A program made the translations under genes and the position numbers. DNA of 64,000 nucleotides. Origin: Anaeramoeba ignava BMAN. Taxonomy: Eukaryota; Protista; Anaeramoebae. The notes under the pieces are model-generated. The model had not been told where the DNA came from and ran no database searches. It saw only the letters and a program-made list of their open reading frames with translations. This document shows, one piece after another, positions 13,301-47,609 of the stretch (position 1 is the stretch's first letter; the number at the start of each line of letters is the position of its first letter). The stretch is taken from positions 248,001 to 312,000 of the forward strand of contig JAPDFW010000085.1 of NCBI GenBank assembly GCA_028826165.1, in the 5' to 3' direction.

Positions 13301-15292
13301 AAGTACCGAATTAAACAGGAAGATCGATTCAGATTAATTGCACAGATTCTATTTTTTTGTCCTATGATATTTCTGCAAACAAAAACACAATCTTTATTCA
13401 TTGATATCCACAAACTCAAGAAAAATGCCAATTTAGTCGGTTTTCTTATTCAGGAATTCTTGCAAATTTTCCCTTTGTTTGCGAATGATTTTCAAAAAGG
13501 AATGGAAACAGAAATTGAGAAGGAAATCGCAAAATTAAAATATAAGAAATTAGCAGAGAAACCCAAAAAAGAGACAAGCAAAGGAGCAACAAAAATGGTA
13601 GAAGATTTTAACTTGGACAGTTTTTTTGCAATATACCAAATAAAGCGGCCATCTTTTTTCAGTTTGATTCCGAAGTATCTGCAAACACTTTTCATATGGA
13701 TCCAAAAGAAATCACAAAAATTCATATCGGAAAAAGAAAAAATAAAATACGATGACAATCCTTTTAGCAAACTAACAACGGTTGATTATGCCACAAAAGA
13801 GAAAATCACAATCAATCTAAGACATCCCGATAAATTTCACTGCGGAACACAAATCCAATATATGATTGAATTTTCCTCTTTTTTTCCAGACGAATGTCTT
13901 GTTGTTTTCATGAGCAATTCACGCATATACATCTCAAGTGATATGAAAAAGATGAATGAGAATATTGATAATATCCAATATCCAAACAATCCGAGCGATA
14001 ACCAGAATAAAAGCACGATCAAATCAAACGAAACATCCAAAGAAAACAGCAACAAAAAATCACAAATAATCAACAAACTCTCACAAATTTATCAATTTCT
14101 TACTACTGATAACACTGAAAAACAGAAAAATAATAATGGCGAGAATTTATTCCCAAATCATTTCCAGTTAGAAGGCCAAATGATGCAAGATGAATCAATT
14201 CAAACACTCTATTCATCAGTGTTTTTCTTTCTGGAGCAAAACAAAAACGATACAGAGACTAAAATACAAACAGAAAAATCGGGAAGATATCACTTCTCGA
14301 CAGGAAACGAGACACCAGCAATTTTTGTAATCCAGAAAAACGAGCCAACATCGGAATCACTAGCAAACGATTTATGGAAAAAATTGACAAAAACAAAAAA
14401 GCCTGTTGTTTCTCTTATTGTCGACAGCGGGAGTCCCGAAACAGACCCAAGATCTTTGCTTGCTGCGGTTTATTACGGGCGATTATGGCGAGATCTAGAT
14501 CTTGATATTTTGCAGGTTGCTTGTCATGCTCCAGACTCGAATAAATTCAACCCTTCCCATTTATTTTTGAAAAAATGGAACGCAAATCTCCGCGAGGCAA
14601 TATTTGGAGAAAAAGAACTCTGTGAACTCTGTAAATACCTCCAATCCGTCAAAGGCAACCCAGTTTTGGAAACACAACTTTTTGAGGCCATTTCAAAAAG
14701 ATTAGAAGATCTCTCAAAAGACAAAAACAAGTCAGAAAAAGATGTTCAATTCAAGCATCGGATCGACAGCAAAAATTTTCCTTACTCGGATTATGATACT
14801 GTTCGCAGATTTTTGGGAATGAACCCAAGCACAAACAATATAGAGCCTCAACTGACGATATTGAAGAAAGAAATACAGTTTCTTTTTGCTCATATGGAAA
14901 GAAGAGGATATTTTCTTTCCTTCAAACGATGCAATCAAGCTCAATGCCTTCATTGCAAAAAGCATCCAAATAAGTCAAAAAGCGTTGAGAATCTTCTGAA
15001 ACGAAATTCTTCCAAGATGTTTTCCCCAATCCCATCCGATATGTATCTTGGTCATTACTGCACCTTTCATGAAATCATCACAAATAATTCCCTTTCTTGT
15101 TATAACTCTCCTCCTCCTTCTTTTCGTACTTCTCTTCTTGAAAACTCCATCTCTAAATGTCCCTTCTTGAATTGTAATTATAGCTCTTTCGGAAAAGATG
15201 ATTTAGTTCGTCATGAAATGCTTTTTCATAATGATCAAATTTCTGAAAAGATCTCTGAAACAATTTCTGAAAAGATCTCTGAAAGGGATTAA
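10374..15292 (+). CDS. Large transposase-derived nuclear protein (HMG-box-like N-terminus, NQ tract, degenerate DDE/RNase H-like domain, C-terminal C2H2 finger); one frameshift at ~11990
   Basis: ORFs 10374-12086 and 12254-15292 join if one A is added in the homopolymer at ~11986-11991 (~1640 aa). Motifs: ARNRYEMFVNSY..AQKEWAKYK; KPVVSLIVDSGSPE..YYGRLWRDLDLDIL..HAPDSNKFNPSH; CPFLNCNY..DLVRHEMLFH. Confidence 0.7.
10980..12210 (+). repeat. Coding hexamer microsatellite (AAAATC/AAAATG/AAATAT) encoding ~400 aa of NQ/NE/NI/NT
   Basis: Directly visible and in frame with the host gene apart from one homopolymer indel. Confidence 0.9.
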
Positions 15293-18597: not shown

Positions 18598-19689
18598 ATG
18601 GATAATGTCAAAGATTTAGAAGAAATATCTGATGATTTAATAGAAGAACATCAACTTCAACCACAAAATCAACACCAATTAGTTCTTGGGTTAGTTTCTC
18701 TTAAATTTTCAATTCCGGCTGTTTTAATATTTGTATTTGTTTCAATTTTCACAACATATACACTTACGATGGTACAAAGCCATATTGAAAAAGGCAGAAT
18801 ACCTTATATTAGTGAGACCTCTGTTTATCAACCAGAATGTTTTATTGTAAATTGATTTTGTAAATTGATTTTATAAATTGATTTTATAAATTGATTTTAT
18901 TTTTATTATTTTTATTATTTTTATAAGTTTGGATTTGGAATGGCTTTTACTTCTGGTTTAATGTTGTTAATAGACTTTAGTATGTATTCTAGTACAAAAA
19001 TAAAAATCAAACGAGAAAACAAAGAAACTACAAAATTCATCTCATTAGTTAAAATATCTCGATTTTGTGGCATTTTCAAAATTAATTTAATGAAACTCAA
19101 TAATATTGCTTTTTTCCTTGGGATTATAGCTTCAATGTGTCTTACTTTGCTATCATCAGTAAATCTCGATCAATACAACAAAACTCACTATGTTTTTGCA
19201 TACAGTTTTTTTACAGCAACTGGATTTCATGGATTTATTATGGATTTTATTTTATATAAACTTTATCGAAAAAGAAAAAAAGATCTGAATTCAAAGGAAA
19301 ATGATAAAAATCAAAATGTTGAATTGGATCAAGTGGCTCTTGTTTCTGATGGTATCCAAATTCACGAAGAAAGCGATAATTTTGATTTCTCAGGCTTGGA
19401 ATCTTCTTTTCCCTCTGAAAATATCTCGCTATCTTTAAAAAAGGAAAAAATTTGGATCATTGTTCGATTGATTCTTGATATTTTTGAAATTACTTCTGGA
19501 TTAATTATGTCGTTATTTCTTGGTTGGATTATGAGAAAAAGTGGCTATGCTGTTGAAGAACATGAAAATCTCTTTTATAACATTGGAGCAATTTTCCAAT
19601 ACATACTTTTAGGCTCTCAATTTTTTCATACATTGGGATATAAAAATGAAATCAGAAATGTAAAAGTTGCTTTTTTTCAAGTTGATTAA
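18598..19689 (+). CDS. DRAM/TMEM150 (Frag1/DRAM/Sfk1 family) membrane protein; 2 exons: 18598-18846, 18928-19689
   Basis: PYISETSVYQPECFIFGFG motif after TM1, then THYVFAYSFF and further TM segments. The 81-nt intron (gtaaat...ataag) joins the two track ORFs in frame. Confidence 0.8.
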
Positions 19690-21227
19690 ATTAAAACTTT
19701 TTTTTTTTTGCTTTTTTTTGGAAATGAAATTAAATTAAAAAATAAAATTTGAAAAATGAAATGAAATGAAATGAAATTAAATGAAAAACATTCCAATTCT
19801 TCAACTTTCCAATTTGAATAAGATCCTGCCAAATAATTCTCTGCTTCAGTTGTTTCACTTTTGATTCCTTTTGGAGGATCATAACTATGGCCAATATTAG
19901 AAAAACCAGGTTGAAGATCTGAATGTAAAATAAGATCATGTCCATATCCAAAAATTGGACCATAAAGTGCATGATAATGAAGTGCGAACTTGGATTCTCG
20001 AGGATTGGAAATGGGTAATTTTTGAGGTGGATCAAGTTTTGGATTCTTCAAACTGAAAAGAAAAGAATCTGAATCTTGAATCCATCTGTTAGGTCCTTTA
20101 CTCCATCCAACTTGAGTGAATCCTCCAAAAATATAGTTATCTGTTGTTTTGATAACAACCAACGTTTTTCCTTTATCATCACAAATATCATGCCACTTTG
20201 TTCCTGTAAAACCATCTCTTTTGGCTGAAAATCCAAGTCGCATTCGTGAAAAGAAATCGTCGTCTTTGATCCATTCTTTTAGTTTATTGAAATGCTCACG
20301 TTCTTTAATAATTTGTGAGTTGAATTGAATTCGAGATTGGAAAATCAAAGAATTTATGCTTTTGGTTTCTTCTTGGTGATTTCGAAGAAATTCATTCAAT
20401 TTGTTTCCCGATTTAAGAGAGTTGATGTTTTGGAATTCGATGATTTTTTGAGAAACATCTCTTGGAATCAAACCTTGCTTCAAAGCAGTATCCAAATTGT
20501 CTGAGGAGATATCGATGAACCTAATTTTATGAATAGCATTGGAAATTTGGTTTTGCAAAGCTTCTTTTTCTTTGTTATCAAGTCTGAGATTTGTTTTATT
20601 GATATTGAGTTTATGCTTTCCCCATGAAATCAAAGAATTGAAAATTGTGAATTCGTTGGTTTTAATATCATCTTGTGATAGAATAAAAACTAAATGCCGT
20701 TCTTCAAGTTGTAGAAAAAAAGGAGTTTGGATAAACTCATCGAAATGAGTTGAAATGAATTGATAACAAAGCTCAATTAATTGATTGAAATTCATTGATT
20801 CGGATAAATTAAGAACGTCAACAACATTTGCTATTTGCAAATTTTTTTGGATATAATTGGAAGCAATTTCAATCACTTCATTAATTGAAAATCTTGTGGA
20901 AAAATGCAAAATTTCAACTGCATTTTGTAAACTCATTTCAATTTTCCCTGAATAAAGATAATTCAAAATTGAATATACACTTCCACTTGAAACTCCTAAT
21001 AAAATCATCTTGTTTTCTTCTAAATCTTTGATCTTGGAATTGAAGAAATTTTTGAAATATTCACTTCTTGAAGAGAGAATTGATTTATGAGTTTTGAATG
21101 AAATTGGTTGTGTTTCTTCGTTTTGTTGACAAACAACTTCAAAATCAAAATAATCCTCTTCTTTTTGGTTTTGAAAAAGGTTTTGTAAATCATTTGAAAG
21201 TTTTTCTAAATTTGAATACGTTTCCAT
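19686..21227 (-). CDS. BTB-BACK-TLDc protein
   Basis: BTB (FDFEVV..FKTHKSILSSRSEYFKNFF..ILNYLYSGKI), BACK-like helices and TLDc (FSAKRDGF..WHDICDDKGKTLVVIKTTDNYIFGGFT..GPIFGYGHDL). Likely start is METYS at 21227, just downstream of a TCATTTT motif. The true stop is probably near 19777 (ECFFI*) if a T-homopolymer is one base short. Confidence 0.85.
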   Translation of the reverse strand: METYSNLEKLSNDLQNLFQNQKEEDYFDFEVVCQQNEETQPISFKTHKSILSSRSEYFKNFFNSKIKDLEENKMILLGVSSGSVYSILNYLYSGKIEMSLQNAVEILHFSTRFSINEVIEIASNYIQKNLQIANVVDVLNLSESMNFNQLIELCYQFISTHFDEFIQTPFFLQLEERHLVFILSQDDIKTNEFTIFNSLISWGKHKLNINKTNLRLDNKEKEALQNQISNAIHKIRFIDISSDNLDTALKQGLIPRDVSQKIIEFQNINSLKSGNKLNEFLRNHQEETKSINSLIFQSRIQFNSQIIKEREHFNKLKEWIKDDDFFSRMRLGFSAKRDGFTGTKWHDICDDKGKTLVVIKTTDNYIFGGFTQVGWSKGPNRWIQDSDSFLFSLKNPKLDPPQKLPISNPRESKFALHYHALYGPIFGYGHDLILHSDLQPGFSNIGHSYDPPKGIKSETTEAENYLAGSYSNWKVEELECFSFNFISFHFIFQILFFNLISFPKKSKKKKVLI

Positions 21228-21323
21228 TTTGTTTAAAAAAATTGAAAAGAAAAAAAATGAAAAAAAAAAAGCAAAAATTAAAATTCCAAAATTTATTTTT
21301 TTCATTTTTTTCTTTTTAATAAA
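21228..21323. promoter_or_regulatory. 96-bp bidirectional promoter between the BTB-BACK-TLDc gene and RCC1-BTB copy 1
   Basis: Outward-facing TTTTCATTTT motifs at ~21254-21264 (minus) and ~21299-21309 (plus). Confidence 0.65.
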
Positions 21324-23075
21324 ATGAATGATTGTTTATTTTGGGGTGAAAATAAATATCCAATTCTTATCAAAAATGAATCAGATTCAATAAAAAAACC
21401 AATTCAATTTAAATTTGAAAATGAAAATGAAAAACAAATTAAACAAATTTCAACAAGTCTTTATTCAATAATTTTCCTTTTTGAAAATGGAAAAGCACTA
21501 GAATATATAAATGGAAAAGATTCAAATCAAAATCCTTCAAAAATCCAAATTAAAAATATTCAAAAAGTAACTGTTGATTATGAAAATGAAGCTATTTTAA
21601 CAATAGAAGGAAATGTATTTGCCAAAGGATATTATATTAATCAAGAAAAATTAAATCAATTTATCAATATTTCATCATTAATTGAAGATACAAATGATAA
21701 AATAATTCAAGATGTTGTTTCTAATGCTCATTCAATTTACTTATTAACTTCAAATCAAAATGCTTATGGAATTGGTTCAAATCAATCTTGTCAACTTGGT
21801 TTTGATTCTAAAACTCTTGAATACACAGAAAAACCAATTTTAATGATGAAAAATGTTTCTAAAATATTTTCAGGAAATTCTTCACAATTTATTTTTCTTT
21901 TAAATTCAAATCAAGAATTATTTGGATGCGGAAATAATAATCATGGTCAACTTGGATTAGGAAAATCAAGAGAAGAAACAAAAATCCAAAAATTAACTAA
22001 AATCCAAAATATTCCAAAAGGTAAAATAATTGATATTCAATGTGGAGTTATTCATTCAATAATGTTGATTGAAAATCAAAATCCAAAAAGAAAATTTTAT
22101 TCATGTGGATATTATCAATATAATGGACTTGGCAAAAATGAAAATACTTATGAATTTACCGAAATCAAATCACCTTTATTTGAAAATGATGATAATATTC
22201 TTGAAATTTCTTGTGGGAATACGCATAATTTGATTTTAACAACAAATGGGAAATTGATAGTATTTGGAACTAATTATTATGGTAAATTAGGAACTGGAGA
22301 TACAGAATATCAAAAAATTCCAATTCAAATTGAACTTCCTAAATTAAGATTTAATGAAAATATTTATAATTATCATCTTTCTTGTGGATATAACAATTCA
22401 TTTCTTTATTATTCTCCTTCTTTTTCCAATCTTGAAGAAGATTCGATAAAACTATTTCGAAGAAAAGAATTTTGTGATATTTCATTTAAAACAGAAAATG
22501 GAGAAATAATTGAAGCTCATAAATTAATATTGAAATATAGATTAAATCAAAATCAAAATGAAAATCAAATTGAAAAACTTCAAGAAATTATTTCAAAAAA
22601 ATCAATTAAAGAATCAAATCAAATATTTGAAATGATTTATTCAAACAGAATAATAAATCCAAAATTATATTCAGAAATTAAAGAAATTATAAATTCAAAT
22701 GAAAAAATTGAAGAAACAATGAAAAGAATTTATTTAAATGAAAATGAAAAAGAAAAAGATTTTATAATTGAAAGAAAAGAAAAACAATATAAATTTCCAA
22801 AATTAATATTAATAATGAGAAGTGAATTATATCGAGGAATGTTTTTATCTGTAACTGAAGATAAATCAAATAAAGTTACAGATTATAGTGAATTAAGTAA
22901 TAAATCATTTCAATTATTTGAATATTGGATTTATTCAAATCAAATTAAAGAAGGAATTCAAATTACAAAAGAAATAATTGATGAATTTAAAATTGGAATT
23001 GATTATTTTCAATTAAATCAAACAAATCCAAATTTATTTGATTTATTAATTAACAAATTTAATAATCAAAATTAA
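21324..23075 (+). CDS. RCC1-repeat / tandem BTB protein, copy 1 (intact)
   Basis: RCC1 repeats (GxNxxGQLG, IQCGxxHS) followed by BTB-like FCDISFKTENGEIIEAHKLIL and a second BTB (KDFII..PKLILIMRSELYRGMF..FEYWIYS). RCBTB/IBTK-like architecture, intronless. Confidence 0.88.
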   Translation: MNDCLFWGENKYPILIKNESDSIKKPIQFKFENENEKQIKQISTSLYSIIFLFENGKALEYINGKDSNQNPSKIQIKNIQKVTVDYENEAILTIEGNVFAKGYYINQEKLNQFINISSLIEDTNDKIIQDVVSNAHSIYLLTSNQNAYGIGSNQSCQLGFDSKTLEYTEKPILMMKNVSKIFSGNSSQFIFLLNSNQELFGCGNNNHGQLGLGKSREETKIQKLTKIQNIPKGKIIDIQCGVIHSIMLIENQNPKRKFYSCGYYQYNGLGKNENTYEFTEIKSPLFENDDNILEISCGNTHNLILTTNGKLIVFGTNYYGKLGTGDTEYQKIPIQIELPKLRFNENIYNYHLSCGYNNSFLYYSPSFSNLEEDSIKLFRRKEFCDISFKTENGEIIEAHKLILKYRLNQNQNENQIEKLQEIISKKSIKESNQIFEMIYSNRIINPKLYSEIKEIINSNEKIEETMKRIYLNENEKEKDFIIERKEKQYKFPKLILIMRSELYRGMFLSVTEDKSNKVTDYSELSNKSFQLFEYWIYSNQIKEGIQITKEIIDEFKIGIDYFQLNQTNPNLFDLLINKFNNQN

Positions 23076-23128
23076 AATTAAAATTAAAATTAAAATTAAA
23101 ATTATTTTTCATTTTTTTCTTTTCAAAA

Positions 23129-24946
23129 ATGAATGATTGTTTATTTTTTGGAAGAAATCAAAATCCAAAACTTATAAAAAATGAACCAGAAAAAATAACA
23201 AAGCCAATTCAATTTAAATTTGAAAATGAAAATGAAAATGAAAAACAAATTAAACAAATTTCAACAGGAAATTATTCAACAATTTTCCTTTTTGAAAATG
23301 GAAAAGCAATAGAATATTTAAATAGAAATGATTCAAATAAAAATCCTGAAAAAATCCAAATTGAAGAAAATATTCAAAAAGTAACTGTTGGTTATCAAAA
23401 TGAAGCTATTTTAACAATAGAAGGAAATGTATTTGCCAAAGGAAATGATATTAATTCAAAAAATTCAAATGAATTTATCAATATTTCATCATTAATTGAA
23501 GATAAAAATGATAGAATAATTGAAGATATTGTTTCTGGAGCTTGTTCAATTTACTTATTAACTTCAAATCAAAATGTTTATGGAATTGGTTTGAATCATT
23601 GGTGTCAACTTGGTTTTGATTCTGAAACACTTAAAGAAACAGAAAAACCAATTTTAATGATGAAAAATGTTTCTAAAATATTTTCAGGAAATACTTCATA
23701 TCATATTTTTCTTTTAAATTCAAATCAAGAATTATTTGGATGTGGATATAATCAATCTGGTCAACTTGGATTAGGAAAATCAATAAAAGAAAGAACAATC
23801 CAAAAATTAACTAAAATCCAAAATATTCCAAAAGGTAAAATAATTGATATTCAATGTGGAATTGCTCATTCAATAATGTTAATTGAAAATCAAAATCCAA
23901 AAAGAAAACTTTATTCATGTGGAGATCGTAATTATAATGGACTTGGCAAATATAAAAATGCTTATGAATTTACTGAAATTAAATCATCTTTATTTGAAAA
24001 TGATAATATTCTTGGTTTTTCTGTTGGATGTTTTCATACTTTGATTTTAACTTCTAATTCAAAATTAATTGGATTTGGTGCTAATTATTATGGTCAATTA
24101 GGAACTGGAGATACAAAAAATCAATTAATTCCAATTCAAATTGAACTTCCTAAATTAAGATTTAATGAAGAAATTTCTAATTATCATATTTCTTGTGGAT
24201 ATCATAAATCATTTCTTTATTATTCTCCTTCTTTTTCCAATCTTGAAGAAGATTTGATAAAATTATTTAAAAGAAAAGAATTTTGTGATATTTCATTTAA
24301 AACAGAAAATGGAGAAATAATTGAAGCTCATAAATTAATATTGAAATATAGATTAAATCAAAATCAAAATCAAATTGAAAAACTTCAAGAAATTATTTCA
24401 AAAAAATCAATTAAAGAATCAAATCAAATATTTGAAATGATTTATTCAAACAATTCCAAAATAAATCCAAAATTATATTCAGAAATTAAAGAAATTATAA
24501 ATTCCAATGAAAAAATTGAAGAAACAATTAAAAGAATTTATTTAAATGAAAATGAAAATGAAAAAGATTTTATTATTGAAAGAAAAGAAAAACAATATAA
24601 ATTTCCAAAATTAATATTAATAATGAGAAGTGAATTATATAGAGGAATGTTTTTATCTGTAACTGAAGATAAATCAAATAAAGTTACAGATTATAGTGAA
24701 TTAAGTAATAAATCATTTCAATTATTTGAATATTGGATTTATTCAAATCAAATTAAAGAAGAGATTCAAATTACAAAAGAAATAATTAATGAAATTCAAT
24801 TTGGAATTGATTATTTTCAATTAAATCAAACAAATCCAAATTTATTTGATTTATTAATTAACAAATTTAATAATCAAAATCAAAATCTAACAAAACAAAA
24901 AGAAAAAGAAAAAGAAAAAGAAAAAGAAAAATGTTTAATTTTTTAA
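23129..24946 (+). CDS. RCC1-repeat / tandem BTB protein, copy 2 (intact; C-terminal CaaX CLIF)
   Basis: Paralogue of copy 1 ending KEKEKEKEKEKCLIF*. Confidence 0.88.
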   Translation: MNDCLFFGRNQNPKLIKNEPEKITKPIQFKFENENENEKQIKQISTGNYSTIFLFENGKAIEYLNRNDSNKNPEKIQIEENIQKVTVGYQNEAILTIEGNVFAKGNDINSKNSNEFINISSLIEDKNDRIIEDIVSGACSIYLLTSNQNVYGIGLNHWCQLGFDSETLKETEKPILMMKNVSKIFSGNTSYHIFLLNSNQELFGCGYNQSGQLGLGKSIKERTIQKLTKIQNIPKGKIIDIQCGIAHSIMLIENQNPKRKLYSCGDRNYNGLGKYKNAYEFTEIKSSLFENDNILGFSVGCFHTLILTSNSKLIGFGANYYGQLGTGDTKNQLIPIQIELPKLRFNEEISNYHISCGYHKSFLYYSPSFSNLEEDLIKLFKRKEFCDISFKTENGEIIEAHKLILKYRLNQNQNQIEKLQEIISKKSIKESNQIFEMIYSNNSKINPKLYSEIKEIINSNEKIEETIKRIYLNENENEKDFIIERKEKQYKFPKLILIMRSELYRGMFLSVTEDKSNKVTDYSELSNKSFQLFEYWIYSNQIKEEIQITKEIINEIQFGIDYFQLNQTNPNLFDLLINKFNNQNQNLTKQKEKEKEKEKEKCLIF

Positions 24947-25082
24947 AAAGAAATAATAATCAATATTAAAATTAAAATTAAAATTAAAATTAAAATTAAA
25001 ATAAAAATTAAAATAAAATAAGAATAAAAAGTGATCAATAAACAAAAAAAAAGGAGAATAAAAAGAGGAAAATTTTTTTTTT

Positions 25083-25203
25083 CTTTTTCATTTTAATTAA
25101 AAAAAATTAATCATTTTTTTCTTTCATTTTAATTAAAAAAAATTAATCATTTTTTTTCTTTTCATTTTAATTAAAAAAAATTAATCATTTTTTTTCTTTT
25201 TCA
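25083..25203 (+). repeat. Three direct copies of a ~37-bp unit (TTTCATTTTAATTAAAAAAAATTAATCATTTTTTTC) in the FG-GAP gene promoter
   Basis: Directly visible; each unit carries TCATTTT motifs. Confidence 0.8.
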
Positions 25204-25268
25204 TTCTTCTTTTTCAAGAACAAAAAAAAACAAAAAAAAAAACTGAAAATAGCAAATAAAATCAAAAA

Positions 25269-27965
25269 ATGAAATCAAATCTTTTCTTTTTCCTCATTCT
25301 CAATATTTTCTTAATTCAATCAATCCAAACTCAACAAAAATCAATTTCCACAATAATTCAAGAATTAAGAACAGAAACAACAAGATATTATTCTACTCCA
25401 AATGAAGCTTGGATTTGGAATTTATTAAGCAATTTTTCAGGTTCAACAGGATACTTTGGGTGTAGTGTTTCAATTCAGAAAGATGTTCTTGTTATTGGAA
25501 CTTTCCTGGCAAATCAAGCATTTATTTACAGATATAATGGAACAAATTTTGAACTTGAACAAATTTTGAGTGAACCAGTTTTATATTTTGGAGGGGATGT
25601 TTCAGTTGATGGAAATGTTATTGCTGTGGGAGCTCATTATGGATTTCAAGTATATGTTTACAGATATAATGGAACAATTTGGAATCTTGAACAAATTTTG
25701 AGTGAACCTTCAATTCCATATTTTGGTTATTCTGTTACAGTTTCTGGAAACGTTATTGGAGTTGGAAGTTATTATGGATATCAAGTATGTGTTTACAGAT
25801 ATAATGGAACAATTTGGAATCTTGAGAAACATTTCCAGGGAGTTGCTGAATATTTTGGATTTTCTCTTTCAATTTATGGAGATGCTCTTGCTGTTGGAGC
25901 ACCTGGTCCAAATCAAACATTTATTTACAGATATAATGGATCAAATTGGAATCTTGAACAAATTTTGAGTGAATCAATTTCAGGTTTTGGGTGGAGTTGT
26001 TCAATTTATGAAAATTCTATTGTTGTCTCAAGTGATAATGGAAATCAAGTATATGTTTACAGATATAATGGATCAAATTGGAATCTTGAACAAATTTTGA
26101 GTGAATCAATTTCATATTTTGGGAATTATGTTTCAATTTATGGAGATGTTATTGCTATTGGAACGGGTGCAAAACAGGCATTTATTTACAGATATAATGG
26201 AACAAATTGGAATGAAGAAGAAATCTTCAGTGATTCAGCTCTATATTTCGGGACTTTTATTTCAGTTTATGGGAATTTTACTGCTATTGGAGCTCCTGGT
26301 GAAAATCAAGCATTTGTTTATGAAGCTCATTTAATTCCTCAAGTTAATATTCTTAATTGTTCATCTTTGTTTTCATCATTTGATTGTTATTGGGATGAAA
26401 TTCAATTTTTCAGGACTGTGAAATATCAAATTAATTATGGATATGATTGGATTGATATTGACTCTCCAATTCTTGAAGATGAGAATGTTTATTATCAACA
26501 ATTTAATTCTTCATTTTATGATAATATTACTGGGAATGAATATTATTCAATTCAAATCAAAGCTTGTGATGTTTCAACAATGAAATGTGGTGAATCTTCT
26601 TCTTTCATTAATTTAACAACAAAAATTGATTCTGTAAAAGGTTTTCATTTATCAAATCCTTCAAATTATTCAATTAATGTTACTTGGAATTATCCAAATG
26701 TTCAAATCAATGAAGGAATTGCTCATCTTAATCATTATAATCTTTCTTATTTCATTCAATCTGAACCTGATTCAATATCTTTCATTTCAGTTGATAATTC
26801 TTCACTTTCCTATCTTTTGAATAATTTAGAATGTGACAATGATTATAATGTTTCAATTTGTGGATGTAGAACACAAGAATGTGAAGGAGATGATAAAGGA
26901 GAAGTTGTTGAGTCATCTATTTCGTTATTTTTTGAAGAAGTTACAAATTTTTCATGTTCAATTTCAAATTCAATCGATATTAATTGTAATTGGAATCAAC
27001 CAATTAATTGTTCAATTCCATTTTATTATAATTTTACTTATCAATCAATTTATCAAAATGATTCAGGAAATTATCAACCAACATCATCAAATCAACAATT
27101 TACAGCTCAATTCCCAAATCAAGAATATCAAATCAATATATCAGCATGTAATTCAAACGGAAAATGTGGAGATATTTCATCAATTTCAATTAAAACTGAT
27201 AATTTAACTGCTCCAATAATTTATGAAACAATTTCCAAAATTGAAGAAATTGAATTTAATTTCACAAAATTAACAAATGCTAAAAATTATTCAATTTCAC
27301 TTAATAATGGAACAAATTGGGAAAAATTTACATCTCTTGATTTAAGTGGAAATGAAGTAATTGGAATCATAAGTGGAATACCAGGAAATATTGAATATAA
27401 TATTTCAATTCGAGGATGTATTGATTTAAATTGTGAAACACCATATTTAGGATTACCTAGTTCAATTATTTCAACAAGAGCTAAATTAGGAAATATTACT
27501 TCATTAAATTGTTATTCATTAATTAATGGATTTGTTTGTAATTGGCATCCATTAATTTTATCAAGTGGATTAAAAGGATATTCATTTACTTACAATTCAA
27601 CATTAATTTGTTTACCAAATTTAATGAATTACTATTCAATTACTTCAGGATTAAAAGGAGGAGAATATTATGAAATTTCAGTTTATTCATCATCTGATTT
27701 AAATTGTTCATTTAATGAATATTCAGGAATGAATTCAACAACATCAATCACAACATTATCCCCTTATGAACCATGTGAACCATGCCAAAAAACTGAAAAT
27801 TCAACGAATTCAAACACAACAACAATAACTGTTGGGATAATTGTTCCAGTTGCTGTTATTTCGGCAATTATTTTAGCAATTATTTTATATAAGAAAAAAA
27901 GAAAAAAACAAGTTATTAAAGAAATTATTAAAGAAAAAGAACTTCATACTGATTTAGACCTTTAA
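25269..27965 (+). CDS. Type I membrane protein: signal peptide, 7 FG-GAP-like propeller repeats, ~5 fibronectin type III domains, TM helix, short basic tail
   Basis: Hydrophobic N-terminus; seven (Y/G)FGxxVSxxGxxxxVGA..QxFxYRYNG..W repeats; FN3 motifs (INVTWNYP, YNVSICGC, YQINISACN, YEISVYS); TM ITVGIIVPVAVISAIILAIIL followed by KKKRKK. Confidence 0.85.
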   Translation: MKSNLFFFLILNIFLIQSIQTQQKSISTIIQELRTETTRYYSTPNEAWIWNLLSNFSGSTGYFGCSVSIQKDVLVIGTFLANQAFIYRYNGTNFELEQILSEPVLYFGGDVSVDGNVIAVGAHYGFQVYVYRYNGTIWNLEQILSEPSIPYFGYSVTVSGNVIGVGSYYGYQVCVYRYNGTIWNLEKHFQGVAEYFGFSLSIYGDALAVGAPGPNQTFIYRYNGSNWNLEQILSESISGFGWSCSIYENSIVVSSDNGNQVYVYRYNGSNWNLEQILSESISYFGNYVSIYGDVIAIGTGAKQAFIYRYNGTNWNEEEIFSDSALYFGTFISVYGNFTAIGAPGENQAFVYEAHLIPQVNILNCSSLFSSFDCYWDEIQFFRTVKYQINYGYDWIDIDSPILEDENVYYQQFNSSFYDNITGNEYYSIQIKACDVSTMKCGESSSFINLTTKIDSVKGFHLSNPSNYSINVTWNYPNVQINEGIAHLNHYNLSYFIQSEPDSISFISVDNSSLSYLLNNLECDNDYNVSICGCRTQECEGDDKGEVVESSISLFFEEVTNFSCSISNSIDINCNWNQPINCSIPFYYNFTYQSIYQNDSGNYQPTSSNQQFTAQFPNQEYQINISACNSNGKCGDISSISIKTDNLTAPIIYETISKIEEIEFNFTKLTNAKNYSISLNNGTNWEKFTSLDLSGNEVIGIISGIPGNIEYNISIRGCIDLNCETPYLGLPSSIISTRAKLGNITSLNCYSLINGFVCNWHPLILSSGLKGYSFTYNSTLICLPNLMNYYSITSGLKGGEYYEISVYSSSDLNCSFNEYSGMNSTTSITTLSPYEPCEPCQKTENSTNSNTTTITVGIIVPVAVISAIILAIILYKKKRKKQVIKEIIKEKELHTDLDL

Positions 27966-28215
27966 CTCCAAAATTAAAGTCAAAATTCAAATTAAAATCA
28001 AAATCAAAATTAAAATCAAAATTAAAATCAAAACTAAAATCAAAATTAAAATTAAAATTAAAACCAAAATTAAAACCAAAATTAAAATTCAAATCAAATT
28101 CAAATTCAAAATTCAAATTTCAAATTCAAATTAAAATTAAAATTAAAATTAAAATCAAAATTAAAATAAAAATTAAAATTAAAATTCAAATTAAAACTAA
28201 AATCAAAAATTTTAA
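27965..28215 (+). repeat. (AAAATT/AAAATC)n hexamer spacer; equivalent tracts at 23070-23103, 29990-30250 and 32085-32390
   Basis: Directly visible; these tracts form the intergenic spacers of the array. Confidence 0.85.
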
Positions 28216-28246
28216 ATTCATTTTTTCATTTTTTTTCTTTTCAAAA

Positions 28247-30004
28247 ATGAATGATTGTTTATTTTTTGGTTTAAATCAATTACCAACTCTGTTAAAATCT
28301 CGAAACTATCTAATAGCAAAACCAATTCAATTTAAATTTGAAAATGAAAATGAAAATGAAAAACAAATCAAACAAATTTCATCAAGTTTATTTTCAACAA
28401 TTTTCCTTTTTGAAAATGGAAAAGCAATAGAATATTTAAATGAAAGATATTCAAATCAAAATCCTGAAAAAATCCAAATTGAAAATATTCAAAAAGTATC
28501 TGTTGGTGTTGAAAATGAAGCTATTTTAACAAAAGAAGGAAATGTATTTGCCAAAGGAAAATATATTAATTCAAATAATCCAAATGAATTTATCAATATT
28601 TCATCATTAATTGAAGATACAAAATGATAGAATAATTGAAGATATTGTTTCTGGTGCTTATTCAATTTACTTATTAACTTCAAATCAAAATGTTTATGGA
28701 ATTGGTTCAAATAGATCAGGTCAACTTGGATTTCAAAAAGTTTATGAAACATACCAACCAATTTTAATGATGAAAAATGTTTCTAAAATATTTTCAGGAA
28801 ATACTTCAAGATTTGTTTTTCTTTTAAATTCAAATCAAGAATTATTTGGATGCGGATGGAATGAATATGGTCAACTTGGATTAGGAGAATCAATAAAAGA
28901 AAAAAAAATCCAAAAATCAACCAAAATACAAAATATTCCAAAAGGAAAGATAATTGATATTCAATGTGGATTTAATCATTCAATAATGTTGATTGAAGAA
29001 GAAGATGAAAATCCAAAAAGAAAACTTTATTCATGTGGGTATTATAAATATAATGGACTTGGCAAAGATGAAGATATTTATGAATTTACTGAAATCAAAT
29101 CATCTTTATTTGAAAATGATAATATTCTTGAAATTTCTGTTGGAGATATCATACTTTGATTTTAACTTCCAAAGGGAAATTAATAGCATTTGGAAATAAT
29201 GATTTTTGTCAGATAACACAACAATATACAAAAAGTCAATTAATTCCAATTCAAATTGAACTTCCTAAATTAAGATTTAATGAAGAAATTTCCAGTTATC
29301 ATATTTCTTGTGGAGAAAATAACTCATTTGTATTTTATGCTTCTTTTTCCAATCTTGAAGAAGATTTGATAAAACTATTTGAAAGAAAAGAATTTTGTGA
29401 TATTTCATTTAAAACCGAAAATGGAGAAATAATTGAAGCTCATAAATTAATATTGAAATATAGATTAAATCAAAATCAAAATGAAATTGAAAAACTTCAA
29501 GAAATTATTTCAAATAAATCAATTAAAGAATCTAATCAAATATTTGAAATGATTTATTCAAACAGAATAATAAATCCAAAATTATATTCTGAAATTAAAG
29601 AAATTATAAATTCAAATGAAAAAATTGAAGAAACAATGAAAAGAATTTATTTAAATGAAAATGAAAATGAAAATGAAAAAGATTTTATTATTGAAAGAAA
29701 AGAAAAACAATATAAATTTCCTAAATTAATATTAATAATGAGAAGTGAATTATATAGAGGAATGTTTTTATCTGTAACAGAAGATAAATCAAATAAAGTT
29801 ACAGATTATAGTGAATTAAGTAATAAATCATTTCAAATATTTGAATATTGGATTTATTCAAATCAAATTAAAGATGAAATTCAAATTACACAAGAAATTA
29901 TTAATGAAATTCAAATTGGAATTGATTATTTTCAATTAAATCAAACAAATCCAAATTTATTTGATTTATTAATTAACAAATTTAATAATCAAAATCAAAA
30001 TTAA
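28247..30004 (+). CDS. RCC1-repeat / tandem BTB protein, copy 3 (frameshifts at ~28622 and ~29146; assembly error or pseudogene)
   Basis: ORFs 28247-28627, 28611-29159 and 29156-30004 are consecutive parts of one paralogue. Confidence 0.8.
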
Positions 30005-30277
30005 AATTAAATTTAAAATTAAAATCAAAATTAAAATCAAAATTAAAATTAAAATTAAAAATAAAATTTAAATTAAAATCAAAATCAAAATTAAAATTAA
30101 AATCAAAATTAAAATTAAAATCAAAATCAAAATCAAAATTAAAATCAAAATTAAAATTTAAATTAAAAATAAAAACCAAAATTAAAATCTAAAATCAAAA
30201 TTAAAATTAAAATCAAAATCAAAATTAAAATTAAAATTAAAATCAAAATTCATTTTTTCATTTTTTTCTTTTCAAAA

Positions 30278-32087
30278 ATGAATGAAATTATATTTTTTGG
30301 TGAAAATGAATTTCCAATTCTTTTCAAAAATGAACCATATAGAATAACAAAACCAATTCAATTTAAATTTGAAAATGAAAATGAAAATGAAAATGAAAAT
30401 GAAAATGAAAATGAAAATGAAAATGAAAAACAAATTAAACAAATTTCATCAGGTCTTTATTCAACAATTTTCCTTTTTAAAAATGGAAAAGCAATAGAAT
30501 ATTTAAGTGGAAATGATTTAAATCAAAATCCTGAAAAAATCCAAATTGAAAATATTCAAAAAGTAACTGTTAATTCTCGAAATGAAGCTATTTTAACAAT
30601 AGAAGGAAATGTATTTGCCAAAGGAAAAGATATTAATCCAAAAAATTCAAAAAAATTTATCAATATTTCATCATTAATTGAAGATAAAAATGATAGAATA
30701 ATTCAAGATATTGTTTCTGGTGCTTATTCAATTTATTTATTAACTTCAAATCAAAATGCTTATGGAATTGGTTTAAATGAACATGGTCAACTTGGTTTTG
30801 ATTTTAAAAAACTTGAAAAAACAGAAAAACCAATTTTAATGATGAAAAATGTTTCTAAAATATTTTCAGGAAATACTTCACTTTATGTTTTTCTTTTGAA
30901 TTCAAATCAAGAATTATTTGGATCTGGATATAATCAATATGGCCAACTTGGATTAGAAGAATCAATAACAGAAAAAGAAGAAATAAAAATCGATAAATTA
31001 ACCAAAATCCAAAATATTCCAAAAGGCAAAATAATTGATATTCAATGTGGGTGGCTTCATTCAATAATGTTGATTGAAAATGAAGATGAAAATGAAAATC
31101 TAAAAAGAAAACTTTATTCATGTGGAAAATATGGTTATAATGGACTTGGCAAAACTAAAGATACTTATGAATTTACTGAAATCAAATCATCTTTATTTGA
31201 AAATGATGATATTCTTGATTTTTCTGTTGGAAATTCTCATACTTTGATTTTAACTTCCAATTCAAAATTAATAGTATTTGGATATAATTTTTATAGTCAA
31301 TTAGGAACTGGAGATATAAAAAACCATTTAATTCCAATTCAAATCGAACTTCCTAAATTAAGATTTAATGAAGATATTTCCAATTATCATATTTATTGTG
31401 AAAATGAAAAATCATTTCTTTATTATTCTCCTCCTTCTTTTTCCAATCTTGAAGAAGATTTGATAAAATTATTTAAAAGAAAAGAATTTTGTGATATTTC
31501 ATTTAAAACCAAAAATGGAGAAATAATTAAAGCTCATAAATTAATATTGAAATATAGATTAAATCAAAATCAAAATCAAAATCAAATTGAAAAACTTCAA
31601 GAAATTATTTCAAAAACATCAATTAAAGAATCAAATCAAATATTTGAAATGATTTATTCAAACAAAATAATAAATCCAAAATTATATTCAGAAATTAAAG
31701 AAATTATAAATTCCAATGAAAAAATTGAAGAAACAATGAAAAGAATTTATTTAAATGAAAATGAAAATGAAAAAGATTTTATTATTGAAAGAAAAGAAAA
31801 ACAATATAAATTTCCAAAATTAATATTAATAATGAGAAGTGAATTATATCGAGGAATGTTTTTATCTGTAACTGAAGATAAATCAAATAAAGTTACAGAT
31901 TATAGTGAATTAAGTGAAGAATCATTTCAAATATTTGAATATTGGATTTATTCAAATCAAATTAAAGATGAAATTCAAATTACACAAGAAATAATTAATG
32001 AAATTAGAAACTGGAATTGATTATTTTCAATTAAATCAAACAAATCCAAATTTATTTGATTTATTAATTAACAAATTTAATAATTAA
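30278..32087 (+). CDS. RCC1-repeat / tandem BTB protein, copy 4 (frameshift at ~32008)
   Basis: The family C-terminus GIDYFQLNQTNPNLFDLLINKFNN* continues in another frame to TAA at 32085-32087. Confidence 0.82.
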
Positions 32088-32436
32088 AATTAAAATTAAA
32101 ATCAAAATTTAAAATTAAAATTAAAATCAAAATTTAAATTAAAAATTAAAAATTAAATTAAAATTAAAATTAAAATTAAAATTAAAATTAAAATTAAAAT
32201 TAAAATTAAAATTAAAATTAAAATTAAAATTAAAATTAAAATTAAAATTAAAATTAAAATTAAAATTAAAATTAAAATTAAAATCAAAATTTAAATCAAA
32301 ATTAAAATCAAAATTCAAAATCAAATTTAAAATCAAAATCAAAATCAAAATTAAAATTAAAATCAAAATTAAAAATTCAAAAATTAAAATTCATTTTTTT
32401 CATTTTTTTCATTTTTCATTTTTTTTCTTTTCAAAA

Positions 32437-34284
32437 ATGAATGATTGTTTATTTTTTGGTGAAAATCAATTTCCAATTCTTTTTGAAAATGAACCAAATA
32501 AAATAATAAAACCAATTCAATTTAAATTTGAAAAAGAAAATGAAAATGAAAATGAAAATGAAAATGAAAATGAAAATGAAAATGAAAATGAAAATGAAAA
32601 TGAAAATGAAAATGAAAATGAAAATGAAAATGAAAAACAAATTAAACAAATTTCAACAGGAAATTATTCGACAATTTTCCTTTTTGAAAATGGAAAAGCA
32701 ATAGAATATTTAAATGAAAATGATTCAAATCAAAATCTTTCAAAAATACAAATTGAAAATATTCAAAAAGTAACTGTTGGTTATCAAGATGAAGCTATTT
32801 TAACAAAAGAAGGAAATGTATTTGCAAAAGGAAAATATATTAATCCAGAAAATCCAAATCAATTTATCAATATTTCATCATTAATTGAAGATAAAAATGA
32901 TAGAATAATTGAAGATATTGTTTCTGGTGCTTATTCAATTTATTTATTAACTTCAAATCAAAATGCTTATGGAATTGGTTCAAATAATTATGGTCAACTT
33001 GGTTTTGATTCTAAAACACTTCAAAAAACAGAAAAACCAATTTTAATTATGAAAAATGTTTCTAAAATATTTTCAGGAAATTCTTCAATTTTTGTTTTTC
33101 TTTTAAATTCAAATCAAGAATTATTTGGATCTGGATGGAATGAACAACGTCAACTTGGATTAGGAGAATCAATAAAAGGAATAAAGATCGATAAATTAAC
33201 CAAAATACAAAATATTCCAAAAGGTAAAATAATTGATATTCAATGTGGTGATGATAATTCAATAATGCTGATTGAAGATGAAAATCAAAATCAAAATCCA
33301 AAAAGAAAACTTTATTCATGTGGAAAATATAGTTATAATGGACTTGGTAAAAATGAACATACTTATGAATTTACTGAAATCAAATCATTTTTATTTGAAA
33401 ATGATAATATTCTTGATTTTTCTGCTGGCAATTCTCATACTTTGATTTTAACATCCAATTCAAAATTGATAGTATTTGGATATAATTTTTATGGCCAATT
33501 AGGAACTGGAGATACAAAACACCATTTAATTCCAATTCAAATTGAACTTCCTAAATTAAGATTTAATGAAGAAATATTTCTAATTATCATATTTATTGTG
33601 AAAATGAAAAATCATTTCTTTATTATTCTCCTTCTTTTTCCAATCTTGAAGAAGATTTGATAAAACTATTTAGAAGAAAAGAATTTTGTAATATTTCATT
33701 TAAAACCAAAAATGGAGAAATAATTGAAGCTCATAAATTAATATTGAAATATAGATTAAATCAAAATCAAAATGAAAATGAAAAACTTCAAGAAATTATT
33801 TCAAATAAATCAATTAAAGAATCAAATCAAATATTTGAAATGATTTATTCAAACAGAAAAATAAATCCAAAATTATATTCTGAAATTAAAGAAATTATAA
33901 ATTCAAATGAAAAAATTGAAGAAACAATGAAAAGAATTTATTTAAATGAAAATGAAAAAGATTTTATAATTGAAAGAAAAGAAAAACAATATAAATTCCC
34001 TAAATTAATATTAATAATGAGAAGTGAATTATATCGAGGAATGTTTTTATCTGTAACTGAAGATAAATCTAATAAAGTTACAGATTATAGTGAATTAAGT
34101 AATAAATCATTTCAAATATTTGAATATTGGATTTATTCAAATCAAATTAAAAGAAGAAATTCAAATTACACAAGAAATAATTGAAGAAATTCAAATTGGA
34201 ATTGATTATTTTCAATTAAATCAAACAAATCCAAATTTATTTGATTTATTAATTAATAAATTTAATAATCAAAATCAAAATTAA
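32437..34284 (+). CDS. RCC1-repeat / tandem BTB protein, copy 5 (frameshifts at ~33577 and ~34151)
   Basis: ORFs 32437-33660 and 33657-34184 plus the family C-terminus ending KFNNQNQN* at 34284. Confidence 0.8.
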
Positions 34285-47411: not shown

Positions 47412-47609
47412 TTTAATTAGAATAAAAATAATAAAAATAATAATAATAATAAAAAAATGAAAATTAAAAAAATGAAAATTAAAATTTTTTTGATTGATTT
47501 TTTATTTTGAATTTGAATTTTTATTTTGAATTTGAATTTGATTTGAAAAAAAATCTTTTTTTTAAATTCTTTTTTTTAAAATCTTTTTTTAAATTCTTTT
47601 TTTAAATTC

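Follow-up and report, generated by a model that had tools for sequence, protein, structure and literature searches.

Among described proteins, IBTK and RCBTB1/2 come closest in domain order, with RCC1 repeats followed by BTB (two such domains in IBTK); they are encoded by conserved single- or few-copy genes, and IBTK, which carries N-terminal ankyrin repeats, is a Cul3 substrate adaptor. RhoBTB proteins, which are linked to Cul3, likewise have tandem BTB domains. A constant ligase-docking module is joined to a binding domain diversified by duplication, with positive selection at its contact surface, in the MATH-BTB and F-box families of nematodes and plants, for which a part in immune-type recognition has been suggested. 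The same holds, including the suggested immune-type role, for teleost finTRIM (PMC2657112). The genes analysed here, from the free-living anaerobic metamonad Anaeramoeba ignava, have the domain order of IBTK and RCBTB1/2 and the logic of MATH-BTB, F-box and finTRIM. They differ from the former in forming a family of ~1,000 copies with a hypervariable propeller face, and from the latter in their host, in using an RCC1 propeller as binder, in an apparently cis-packed double BTB without BACK, and in being far more numerous (~1,000 near-equidistant copies, 4% of a 43-Mb genome). The likeness to IBTK is one of domain order and annotation: RCC1 and two BTB stretches are present, and an ankyrin match was absent from the Pfam scan. 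As for RhoBTB, the A. ignava BTB-BTB module also occurs fused to a Rab-like GTPase, whereas Pfam found no GTPase domain in the genes described below.

The window (64,000 nt; positions 248,001 to 312,000 of contig JAPDFW010000085.1, strain BMAN) contains an array (21324-34284) in which the initial annotation had counted five tandem RCC1-BTB-BTB paralogues, a number borne out by ORFs and translations. All five lie on the forward strand. c1 (21324-23075; 583 aa, ending in an NNQN tail) and c2 (23129-24946; 605 aa) are intact. Pfam identified the RCC1-like domain, RCC1 repeats and two BTB stretches in c1; c2, which was also modelled with AlphaFold, is the reference copy for residue numbering throughout and comprises the propeller (residues 1-364; 23129-24220), BTB1 (~24239-24544) and BTB2 (~24569-24814). 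c3 (28247-30004) is split into three ORFs by +1 in an A-run near 28618-28621 and -1 near 29147. In c4 (30278-32090) a 580-aa ORF stops at 32020 and homology continues out of frame to ~32090, +1 near 32007 costing the last ~25 residues. c5 (32437-34284) has +2 near 33572 and +1 near 34150, and carries a long (GAAAAT)18 NE-repeat near its N-terminus (Tandem Repeats Finder). Thus two copies are intact, one is truncated late and two have two frameshifts each. Introns were ruled out as the cause of the breaks by overlaps of 4 to 17 nt between the pieces of each interrupted ORF. At 28621 in c3, contigs of three sequencing runs show a form shorter by 1 nt, which may come from paralogues, since Logan contigs of all four public runs over this part of the array are ~60-nt fragments common to several paralogues. 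An unrelated gene for an FG-GAP/fn3 membrane protein lies within the array span (25269-27965), unmentioned, like the frameshifts, in the initial annotation, and the array is bordered by housekeeping genes (USP-type deubiquitinase, Rpn2, presenilin-like and LRR-PH proteins); a neighbouring BTB-BACK-TLDc gene gives a BACK match in the Pfam scan. The c4-c5 pair was not found elsewhere in the genome as a segmental duplication (best nucleotide identity 91%). A ciliate-type genetic code, considered on account of in-frame TAA in genome matches, was rejected because TAA is confined to the NQ tail, where it alternates with CAA, and CAA is the Gln codon used within the genes. The array probably represents five members of a lineage-specific family, two or three of them degenerate.

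Judged by conserved DNA words, that family has between ~1,000 and 1,240 copies and takes up about 4% of a genome of 42.8 Mb: a 39-mer from BTB2 has 1,244 genome matches and a 47-mer from the propeller 1,006 (controls, 0 for both), and copies are found on nearly all contigs. This copy number is established, as is the restriction of the sampled relatives of the BTB-BTB module to Anaeramoeba (20/20); the best 120 of 1,168 database matches are all from A. ignava. By a rough estimate that takes the highest locus tag seen (M0811_14691) as a guide, about one gene in 15 would belong to this single recognition-type family. Its genes are intronless and intact at 29 of the 30 best loci, with frameshifts in about a quarter of the partial neighbouring copies there. 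As in birth-and-death receptor families, there are many paralogues, pseudogenes, purifying selection over most of the protein and omega >1 on a binding surface (1.2-1.9 once variable codons are given their own synonymous rate), and it is reasonably likely that the family is specific to A. ignava and evolves in this way. It is seemingly undescribed, though its proteins are deposited, some of them annotated as 'btk-binding protein-related' or 'RCC1 and BTB domain-containing protein'; the main text of the genome paper uses none of the terms BTB, RCC1, ubiquitin and ankyrin, and a literature search on Anaeramoeba and BTB listed a single match, on an unrelated subject. Ank-BTB and ARM-RCC1-BTB relatives occur elsewhere in the genome.

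The six series of loop motifs on which a contrast between constant and hypervariable regions had been proposed are all present in the translations and the alignment, and the contrast greatly exceeds what chance would give: over 15 independent pairs of nearest family members, amino acid differences per site are 0.73 at the variable sites defined by motif, 0.14 in the remaining propeller and 0.06 in BTB-BTB. The paratope-like composition claimed for these sites was recovered for Y (6x), W (60x) and R (3x), weakly for H (1.4x) and not for N (0.9x), with D (2.3x) and S (1.5x) further enriched; variable positions favour Tyr, Trp, Arg, Asp and Ser. Codon models (MG94xHKY/F3x4 omega-grid mixture) fitted to 31 intact copies bore out the expectation of sites with dN/dS >1 (lnL -13222.0, against -13648.4 with omega capped at 1). 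After Bonferroni correction omega exceeds 1 at 35 sites, 34 of them in the propeller, although counts made on the tree are inflated by its star-like shape and by homoplasy, 43.5% of informative site pairs failing the four-gamete test; a PHI-like test of patchwork ancestry by recombination showed no dependence on distance (p = 0.47). With equal synonymous scales, the scaffold of the propeller has omega 0.28 and the BTB-BTB tail 0.19, so that both are under purifying selection, and a tree-free fit to the 15 pairs puts omega at 6.4 for 33 codons defined by motif (2dlnL 872). Gene-wide dN/dS was 0.89 by NG86 counting and 0.53 by a frequency-aware ML model, which replaced NG86 because extreme A+T bias inflates the latter. 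The site-specific excess of replacements is established; each blade has three such spots, ~35 to 55 residues in all, and replacement there appears to run several times faster than at silent sites.

The predicted product of each gene is a beta-propeller of RCC1 type with seven blades, and behind it a constant module of two BTB domains in tandem. The propeller belongs to the RCC1-like superfamily (Pfam PF25390, PF00415, PF13540; PDB matches UVR8, HERC1, RCC1, RPGR and HERC2), and its AlphaFold model has 28 strands in seven groups of four, with pLDDT >90 over residues 80-340. When modelled strands were combined with counts of omega >1 sites, 26 sites fell in face-1 loops and 0 in face-2 loops (Fisher p = 8e-8), as predicted from the suggestion of a single binding face, and the remaining eight propeller sites are at the face-1 ends of strands. 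This one-face topology, also established, concerns the side opened by two loop classes (GxNxxG loops and GxxH turns). In the alignment, the family's variable residues fall on UVR8 E43/D44, W94/D96, D129 and R146; W94 and D129 we take to lie in the UVR8 dimer interface. E43, D44, D96 and R146 are salt-bridge residues across that interface (PMC5091643). By sequence alignment, the selected face would correspond to the UVR8 dimerisation face. By sequence, no solved structure matches better than UVR8 (E 4e-31), which has the same seven-bladed RCC1 fold; unlike the family, it is a conserved photoreceptor whose Trp/Arg/Asp interface is fixed, and it has no BTB domains. Both the site-model and the one-face tests were passed, so the architecture of variable binder and constant module put forward initially is well supported; the effector half of that idea is circumstantial.

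The reading that we favour, with moderate confidence, is a birth-and-death family of variable-face propeller binders on a constant, cis-packed BTB-BTB, with BTB2 handing the ligand to a Cul3-type ligase. Each paralogue would bind a different protein ligand through its variable face, one candidate class being fast-changing foreign proteins of prey, symbionts or viruses. The double BTB fold is established: two BTB stretches are detected by Pfam, many solved BTBs match by profile, and two BTB-like units are seen in the model, which for the module alone (241 residues, diverse alignment) reaches pLDDT 95.2 and pTM 0.88, the BTB part having pLDDT 30-45 when the whole protein was modelled with a shallow family alignment. 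BTB2 superimposes on solved BTBs with rmsd 2.5-3.5 A over ~115 residues (Foldseek, VIA). The best structural matches to the module are 4U2M (Z 14.7, 194 residues aligned) and 4U2N (Z 13.8, 186), the Miz1-BCL6 and Miz1-NAC1 POZ fusions, with single BTB domains at Z about 11.5; this suggests that in the modelled structure BTB1 and BTB2 are packed on each other like a tethered BTB dimer. The two fusions are single-chain tethered dimers as well, but engineered from transcription factors, whereas the arrangement here is natural and its BTB1 is shortened, with the third strand missing in the model. Packing in cis as a BTB dimer would prevent mixed dimers among near-identical paralogues.

Recruitment of Cul3 is where this reading is most open to a competitor, in which the propellers are diversified binders without Cul3 and BTB-BTB is a structural or oligomerising stalk, or a recruiter of another partner. 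Ligands would then be sequestered, scaffolded or localised, for instance at membranes through the CaaX-like forms described below. The sequence profile of BTB-BTB matches KBTBD4, KBTBD2 and SPOP best, all of them Cul3 adaptors, followed by KLHL3/22/26 and KEAP1. By structure, transcription-factor BTBs match about as well as Cul3 adaptors, and BTB-zinc-finger domains, which are mostly not Cul3 adaptors, do so too. The surface usually used as a dimer interface is apparently occupied by BTB1, in line with a role outside Cul3 ligases; to our knowledge, however, the two known types of tandem-BTB protein, IBTK and RhoBTB, are both Cul3 adaptors. A Cul3-like gene is present in the genome, and this is established (contig 58; best match human Cullin-3, E 5.6e-117), other cullin loci of A. 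ignava having Cul4 or Cul1/2 as best match. Cul3 adaptors carry a phi-x-E motif in the BTB alpha3-beta4 loop, a 3-box/BACK region forms about a fifth of the Cul3-binding surface of KLHL3, and SPOP requires its BACK domain for full Cul3 binding (PMC3616122). In three copies scanned with Pfam, 3-box/BACK was absent after BTB2, and most copies end ~20 residues past it. The motif is only approximate: in the alignment with KBTBD4 the superfamily has V-x-D at the L-K-E position, and the subfamily reads VTED, with one extra residue and a varying E513. The acidic D514 at this position is nonetheless conserved in at least 90% of the superfamily. From its profile BTB2 would most resemble Cul3 adaptors, and Cul3 recruitment is circumstantial; we consider binders that act without Cul3 rather unlikely.

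c2 ends in a Lys-rich stretch and a C-terminal CLIF (24893-24943, forward strand, from the translation), a predicted prenylation signal, and comparable Lys-rich stretches with C[LSFC]IF ends are found in 22 of 120 family proteins. About a fifth of sampled members, including c2, thus carry a polybasic CaaX-like end and would sit on membranes. Such tails are typical of GTPase and trafficking machinery, small GTPases are the classical partners of RCC1-like propellers, and the paralogues might accordingly be regulators or adaptors of the host's own small GTPases and trafficking, one for each endogenous Rab, Rho or Arf-type protein or partner. Expansion of the Rab and TBC families reported in the A. 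ignava genome paper would fit this, as would P0154, in which this BTB-BTB module is fused to a Rab-like GTPase, and P0049, a family member with an annotated Ras-family domain. However, ~1,000 receptors far exceed any plausible endogenous GTPase set, and contact-face omega well above 1, near saturation, implies ever-changing targets. RCC1 binds Ran through the face homologous to the variable face of the family, so that the face expected to contact a GTPase is here the one that is not conserved. The conserved GTPase-contact face of RCC1 proper, the Ran exchange factor, was not found: the face of GxNxxG loops and GxxH turns is hypervariable, and there is therefore no conserved catalytic face across the family. 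A role on endogenous GTPases is improbable, and propeller binders directed at varied ligands through a Cul3-type ligase remain our preferred reading.

Diversification of these binders need not be adaptive if the variable positions are unconstrained or locally hypermutable loops in a recently amplified, partly decaying family. Frameshifted copies are common and homoplasy is high. When variable codons, which are near saturation, are given their own synonymous rate, the fitted synonymous scale there is 2.5 to 4.8 times higher and omega in pairs falls to 1.24 (not significant), but omega on the tree is still 1.9 (2dlnL 13.3). At variable codons that encode the same residue, synonymous differences are only 2.06x the scaffold value, against >5x for replacements, and the scaffold between them is clearly under purifying selection in a family whose best loci are nearly all intact. 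Residue composition is far from the drift expectation in an 80% A+T genome, with Tyr at 18%, Asp+Glu at 16% and Ile at 3% of variable sites against ~8%, ~4% and ~14%, respectively, in our own base-composition estimate. Unconstrained or hypermutable loops, with neither adaptive diversification nor a repertoire function, are hence very improbable.

Amplification of the family seems to have involved its flanks. (AAAATT)n microsatellites (Tandem Repeats Finder, forward strand) lie between c1 and c2 (23055-23104, starting within the NQ-coding tail of c1), upstream of c3 ((AAAATT)40; 27970-28208), between c3 and c4 ((AAAATT)45; 29978-30250) and between c4 and c5 ((AAAATT)52; 32073-32391), and the repeat is also found at the flanks of most family copies elsewhere in the genome. 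A conserved T-rich element is located immediately 5′ of the c2 start codon (23108-23128) on the same strand, with an exact match upstream of c4 (30257-30277), a T-run length variant with 3 mismatches upstream of c3 (28226-28246) and a motif match upstream of c5 (32416-32436). It precedes nearly all of the 31 copies, has 523 genome matches (control, 0) and is a candidate core promoter or 5′ UTR. Copies may have spread as units of T-rich element, ORF and (AAAATT)n repeat, the repeat perhaps being derived from the NQ-coding tail. A mobile element or an endogenised giant virus as the carrier of the family, which shared conserved flanks, copies on nearly all contigs and the large BTB, ankyrin or F-box families often found in such viruses might suggest, can be dismissed as extremely improbable, given that the copies are flanked by a microsatellite and a short T-rich element and not by terminal repeats, that G+C content matches the host, and that beside the array no transposase or viral gene was found in the window, its neighbours being housekeeping genes.

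The gene family is consistent with a repertoire, encoded in the germline, of proteins that bind their ligands inside the cell and are perhaps receptors of ubiquitin ligases. More tentatively, it might be an antibody-like germline system, in which ~1,000 intracellular propeller receptors would share a cis-dimeric BTB-BTB but differ in a paratope-like face rich in Tyr, Trp, Arg and Asp; they would police symbiont, prey or virus proteins via ubiquitination, some prenylated members doing so on membranes such as the symbiosome or phagosome. If true, this would be an innate immune or symbiont-control system of a protist, built on a scaffold not known for such use. Large recognition families with hypervariable contact surfaces are a hallmark of immune and self/non-self systems, of which little is known in free-living protists, and A. 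ignava lives in obligatory bacterial contact. With ~35 to 55 positions diversified across one flat face, the RCC1 propeller would make a natural scaffold for binders that is new and of interest to protein engineering and to the evolution of ubiquitin-ligase adaptors, and the cis-packed double BTB suggests how a thousand near-identical adaptors could operate in one cell without mixed dimers.

The forward strand of the window carries five homologous genes (ORF listing and translation), tandem paralogues c1 to c5 in which an RCC1 propeller (residues 1-364 of c2, the reference for numbering) precedes a constant module of two BTB domains, BTB1 and BTB2. c1 (21324-23075; 583 aa) and c2 (23129-24946; 605 aa) are intact, each with an RCC1-like domain and two BTB stretches in Pfam, while c3 (28247-30004) consists of three overlapping ORF pieces, c4 (30278-32020; 580 aa) is truncated and c5 (32437-34284) runs through three frames. 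DNA alignment and tblastn frame analysis placed the breaks in c3 in an A-run near 28618-28621 (+1) and near 29147 (-1), in c4 near 32007 (+1, costing the last ~25 residues) and in c5 near 33572 (+2) and 34150 (+1). Introns are ruled out as their origin, since the ORF pieces overlap, and the breaks in c3-c5 are therefore frameshifts in a family whose members here are intronless. All loop motif series listed in the initial annotation were recovered from these copies. Close to the N-terminus, in a low-confidence loop of the predicted model, an (NE)n stretch is coded by (GAAAAT)n, with 2-3 units in c1-c3, 10 in c4 (30370-30429) and 18 in c5 (32529-32636).

Nearly all copies have a T-rich element of ~27 nt immediately 5′ of the ATG and are flanked by (AAAATT)n arrays. 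These extend the NQ-coding (AATCAA)n tail with TAA in place of CAA, and the microsatellites derived from it, (AAAATT)40-52, fill the spacers between copies (27970-28208, 29978-30250 and 32073-32391), where they may drive unequal crossing-over. A CaaX-like end (C[LSFC]IF) after a Lys-rich stretch was found in 22 of 120 family proteins (~18%), including c2 (24893-24943); other sampled members stop sooner, within the NQ tail, and in some copies a CaaX-coding remnant persists 3′ of the stop. Judged by this motif, the CaaX-like members may be membrane-anchored.

The best 120 of 1,168 protein matches are all from Anaeramoeba ignava, variously annotated as ‘BTB domain-containing’, ‘claret isoform a’, ‘btk-binding protein-related’ or ‘regulator of chromosome condensation’. 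The 42.8-Mb assembly containing the window has at least 72 full-length copies with 84-88% identity. A 39-mer from BTB2 occurs at 1,244 places in the genome (≤3 mismatches; control, 0), a propeller 47-mer at 1,006 and a 29-mer spanning the upstream element and start codon at 523, and the family totals ~1.8 Mb, ~4% of the genome. Apparent frameshifts affect three of the five window copies and the visible part of 8/33 neighbouring copies clipped by locus ends; 29 of the 30 best-matching loci are intact, in a sample that favours good matches. In public runs the region is present solely as ~60-nt contigs, fragmented by the repeated family. The words BTB, RCC1, ubiquitin and ankyrin are absent from the main text of the genome paper (PMC11550330), and the single paper listed by a literature search for Anaeramoeba with BTB is unrelated.

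Selection was analysed on 31 distinct intact copies (from 30 loci and the window), codon-aligned and fitted with our own MG94xHKY model (F3x4 frequencies, FastTree topology). Whole-gene omega was 0.53 by maximum likelihood and 0.89 by NG86 counting, the latter inflated by the 80% A+T bias. As the initial annotation had anticipated for the loops, a mixture over an omega grid (lnL -13222.0) fitted better than one with omega capped at 1 (-13648.4), and 35 sites had omega >1 after Bonferroni correction, 34 in the propeller and one (443) in the BTB part; the posterior exceeded 0.9 at 63 sites. Partition fits gave omega 0.28 for the scaffold (the propeller outside the variable sites) and 0.19 for BTB-BTB, with equal synonymous scales (0.69 and 0.74), so the tail is kept by purifying selection on the protein rather than by extra homogenisation. 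The tree has a star-like shape (branch length 3.74 terminal, 0.52 internal) and 43.5% of informative site pairs fail the four-gamete test, whatever their distance; because the tree is thus unreliable, the test was redone tree-free. In 15 independent nearest pairs, omega at 33 motif-defined codons was 6.4 under a synonymous rate shared across the gene (2dlnL 872). The contrast between constant and variable regions proposed in the initial annotation was borne out in these pairs, with 0.73 amino-acid differences per site at variable positions versus 0.14 in the remaining propeller and 0.06 in the BTB part.

When variable codons were given their own synonymous rate, the fitted synonymous scale rose 2.5- to 4.8-fold and omega fell to 1.9 on the tree (2dlnL 13.3) and to a non-significant 1.24 in the pairs, a test that loses power because these codons are near saturation. 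Local hypermutation as the source of the replacement excess is formally still tenable; however, where copies share a residue at a variable site, codons differ just 2.06 times as often as at residue-matched scaffold sites, too small a synonymous excess to account for the replacements. The 35 sites are enriched in Tyr (18%, 6x scaffold), Trp (60x), Arg (3x), Asp (2.3x) and Ser (1.5x) and depleted in Ile, Leu, Gly and Pro, a make-up quite unlike what mutational drift would yield where A+T is so abundant.

In the AlphaFold model of c2 the propeller is confident, its 28 strands forming seven groups of four (a to d). Within each blade, variable spots are confined to the a-to-b loop (at GxNxxG and again ~12 residues further on), the c-to-d turn (the GxxH motif) and the adjoining strand ends. 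These two loops hold 26 of the 34 propeller sites and the b-to-c and d-to-a loops none (Fisher p = 8e-8), the other eight being the final residue of strand a or the first 1-3 of strand b. Alternate loops of the up-and-down propeller meander open on the same side, and the variable sites therefore all lie on one face, as had been predicted; it is through this same face that RCC1 binds Ran. The best solved relative of the propeller is UVR8 (E 4e-31), in which E43/D44, W94/D96, D129 and R146 align with c2 Q209/S210, D266/N268, C301 and A318. W94 and D129 lie at the UVR8 dimer interface. Salt bridges across this interface involve E43, D44, D96 and R146 (PMC5091643). This alignment lends independent support to a single variable face.

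The 241-residue tail matched 330 clusters among 1.84 billion cluster representatives. Twenty were sampled, 18 from A. ignava and two from A. flamelloides, the latter with ~32% identity and fused to ankyrin repeats; two distant relatives also occur in a transcriptome-derived proteome. N-terminal partners include other RCC1 subfamilies, ARM plus RCC1, ankyrin repeats and a Rab-like GTPase, and among the sampled relatives the module is thus confined to the genus and recurs there with more than one kind of binder scaffold. Used as a profile, 80 diverse modules matched the BTB domains of KBTBD4 (1e-12), KBTBD2, SPOP, KLHL3/22/26 and KEAP1, as well as BCL6-type domains. AlphaFold with this alignment modelled the module with pLDDT 95.2 and pTM 0.88, and its best structural matches over the whole length were 4U2M (Z 14.7, 194 residues aligned) and 4U2N (Z 13.8), both single-chain tethered BTB dimers, versus Z ~11.5 at most for single BTB domains. 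We infer that BTB1, itself shortened, packs against BTB2 in the manner of a cis dimer.

Genes around the array are ordinary (USP deubiquitinase, Rpn2, presenilin-like and LRR-PH proteins). Between c2 and c3 lies an unrelated forward-strand gene (25269-27965) for an 898-aa FG-GAP/fn3 single-pass membrane protein that is rich in NxS/T sites and has a short cytoplasmic tail; within this gene a 132-nt tandem repeat array (25466-26320) encodes FG-GAP blades. A reverse-strand BTB-BACK-TLDc gene (19686-21305), a second and unrelated BTB architecture, adjoins the array head to head with c1, with 18 nt between annotated start codons, although translation may in fact begin at an internal Met. Three forward-strand ORFs (5248-9468, 10374-12086 and 12254-15292; 1,406, 570 and 1,012 aa) lack any Pfam match, and a 42% G+C island surrounds the first, in a genome of ~20% G+C. 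About 10 kb downstream of the array, three ubiquitin-proteasome genes stand in a row on the reverse strand (43475-49898), encoding a DUSP-domain protein, a USP-type deubiquitinase with zf-UBP and the proteasome subunit Rpn2.

Among the cullins of the genome are a Cul3-like one (E 6e-117 to human Cul3) and others resembling Cul4 and Cul1/2. Two tandem cullin-like genes with several exons were seen on contig 57 (~231500-239900), and another cullin, split over two ORFs, on contig 109. The phi-x-E position reads V-x-D across the superfamily, its Asp conserved to 90% or more, and VTED in the window subfamily; a Pfam scan found no 3-box/BACK after BTB2. This region contributes about a fifth of the KLHL3 surface binding Cul3, and SPOP requires its BACK domain for full Cul3 binding (PMC3616122). 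With a Cul3-like gene, an approximate phi-x-E and no 3-box/BACK, coupling of the module to Cul3 is plausible but unproven. In the initial annotation's reading, a repertoire that tags foreign proteins via Cul3, the ubiquitin-ligase part is thus circumstantial and the foreign nature of the targets conjectural; what omega and the single face uphold is the binder part, and there is good support for a variable-binder repertoire carried by a constant module.
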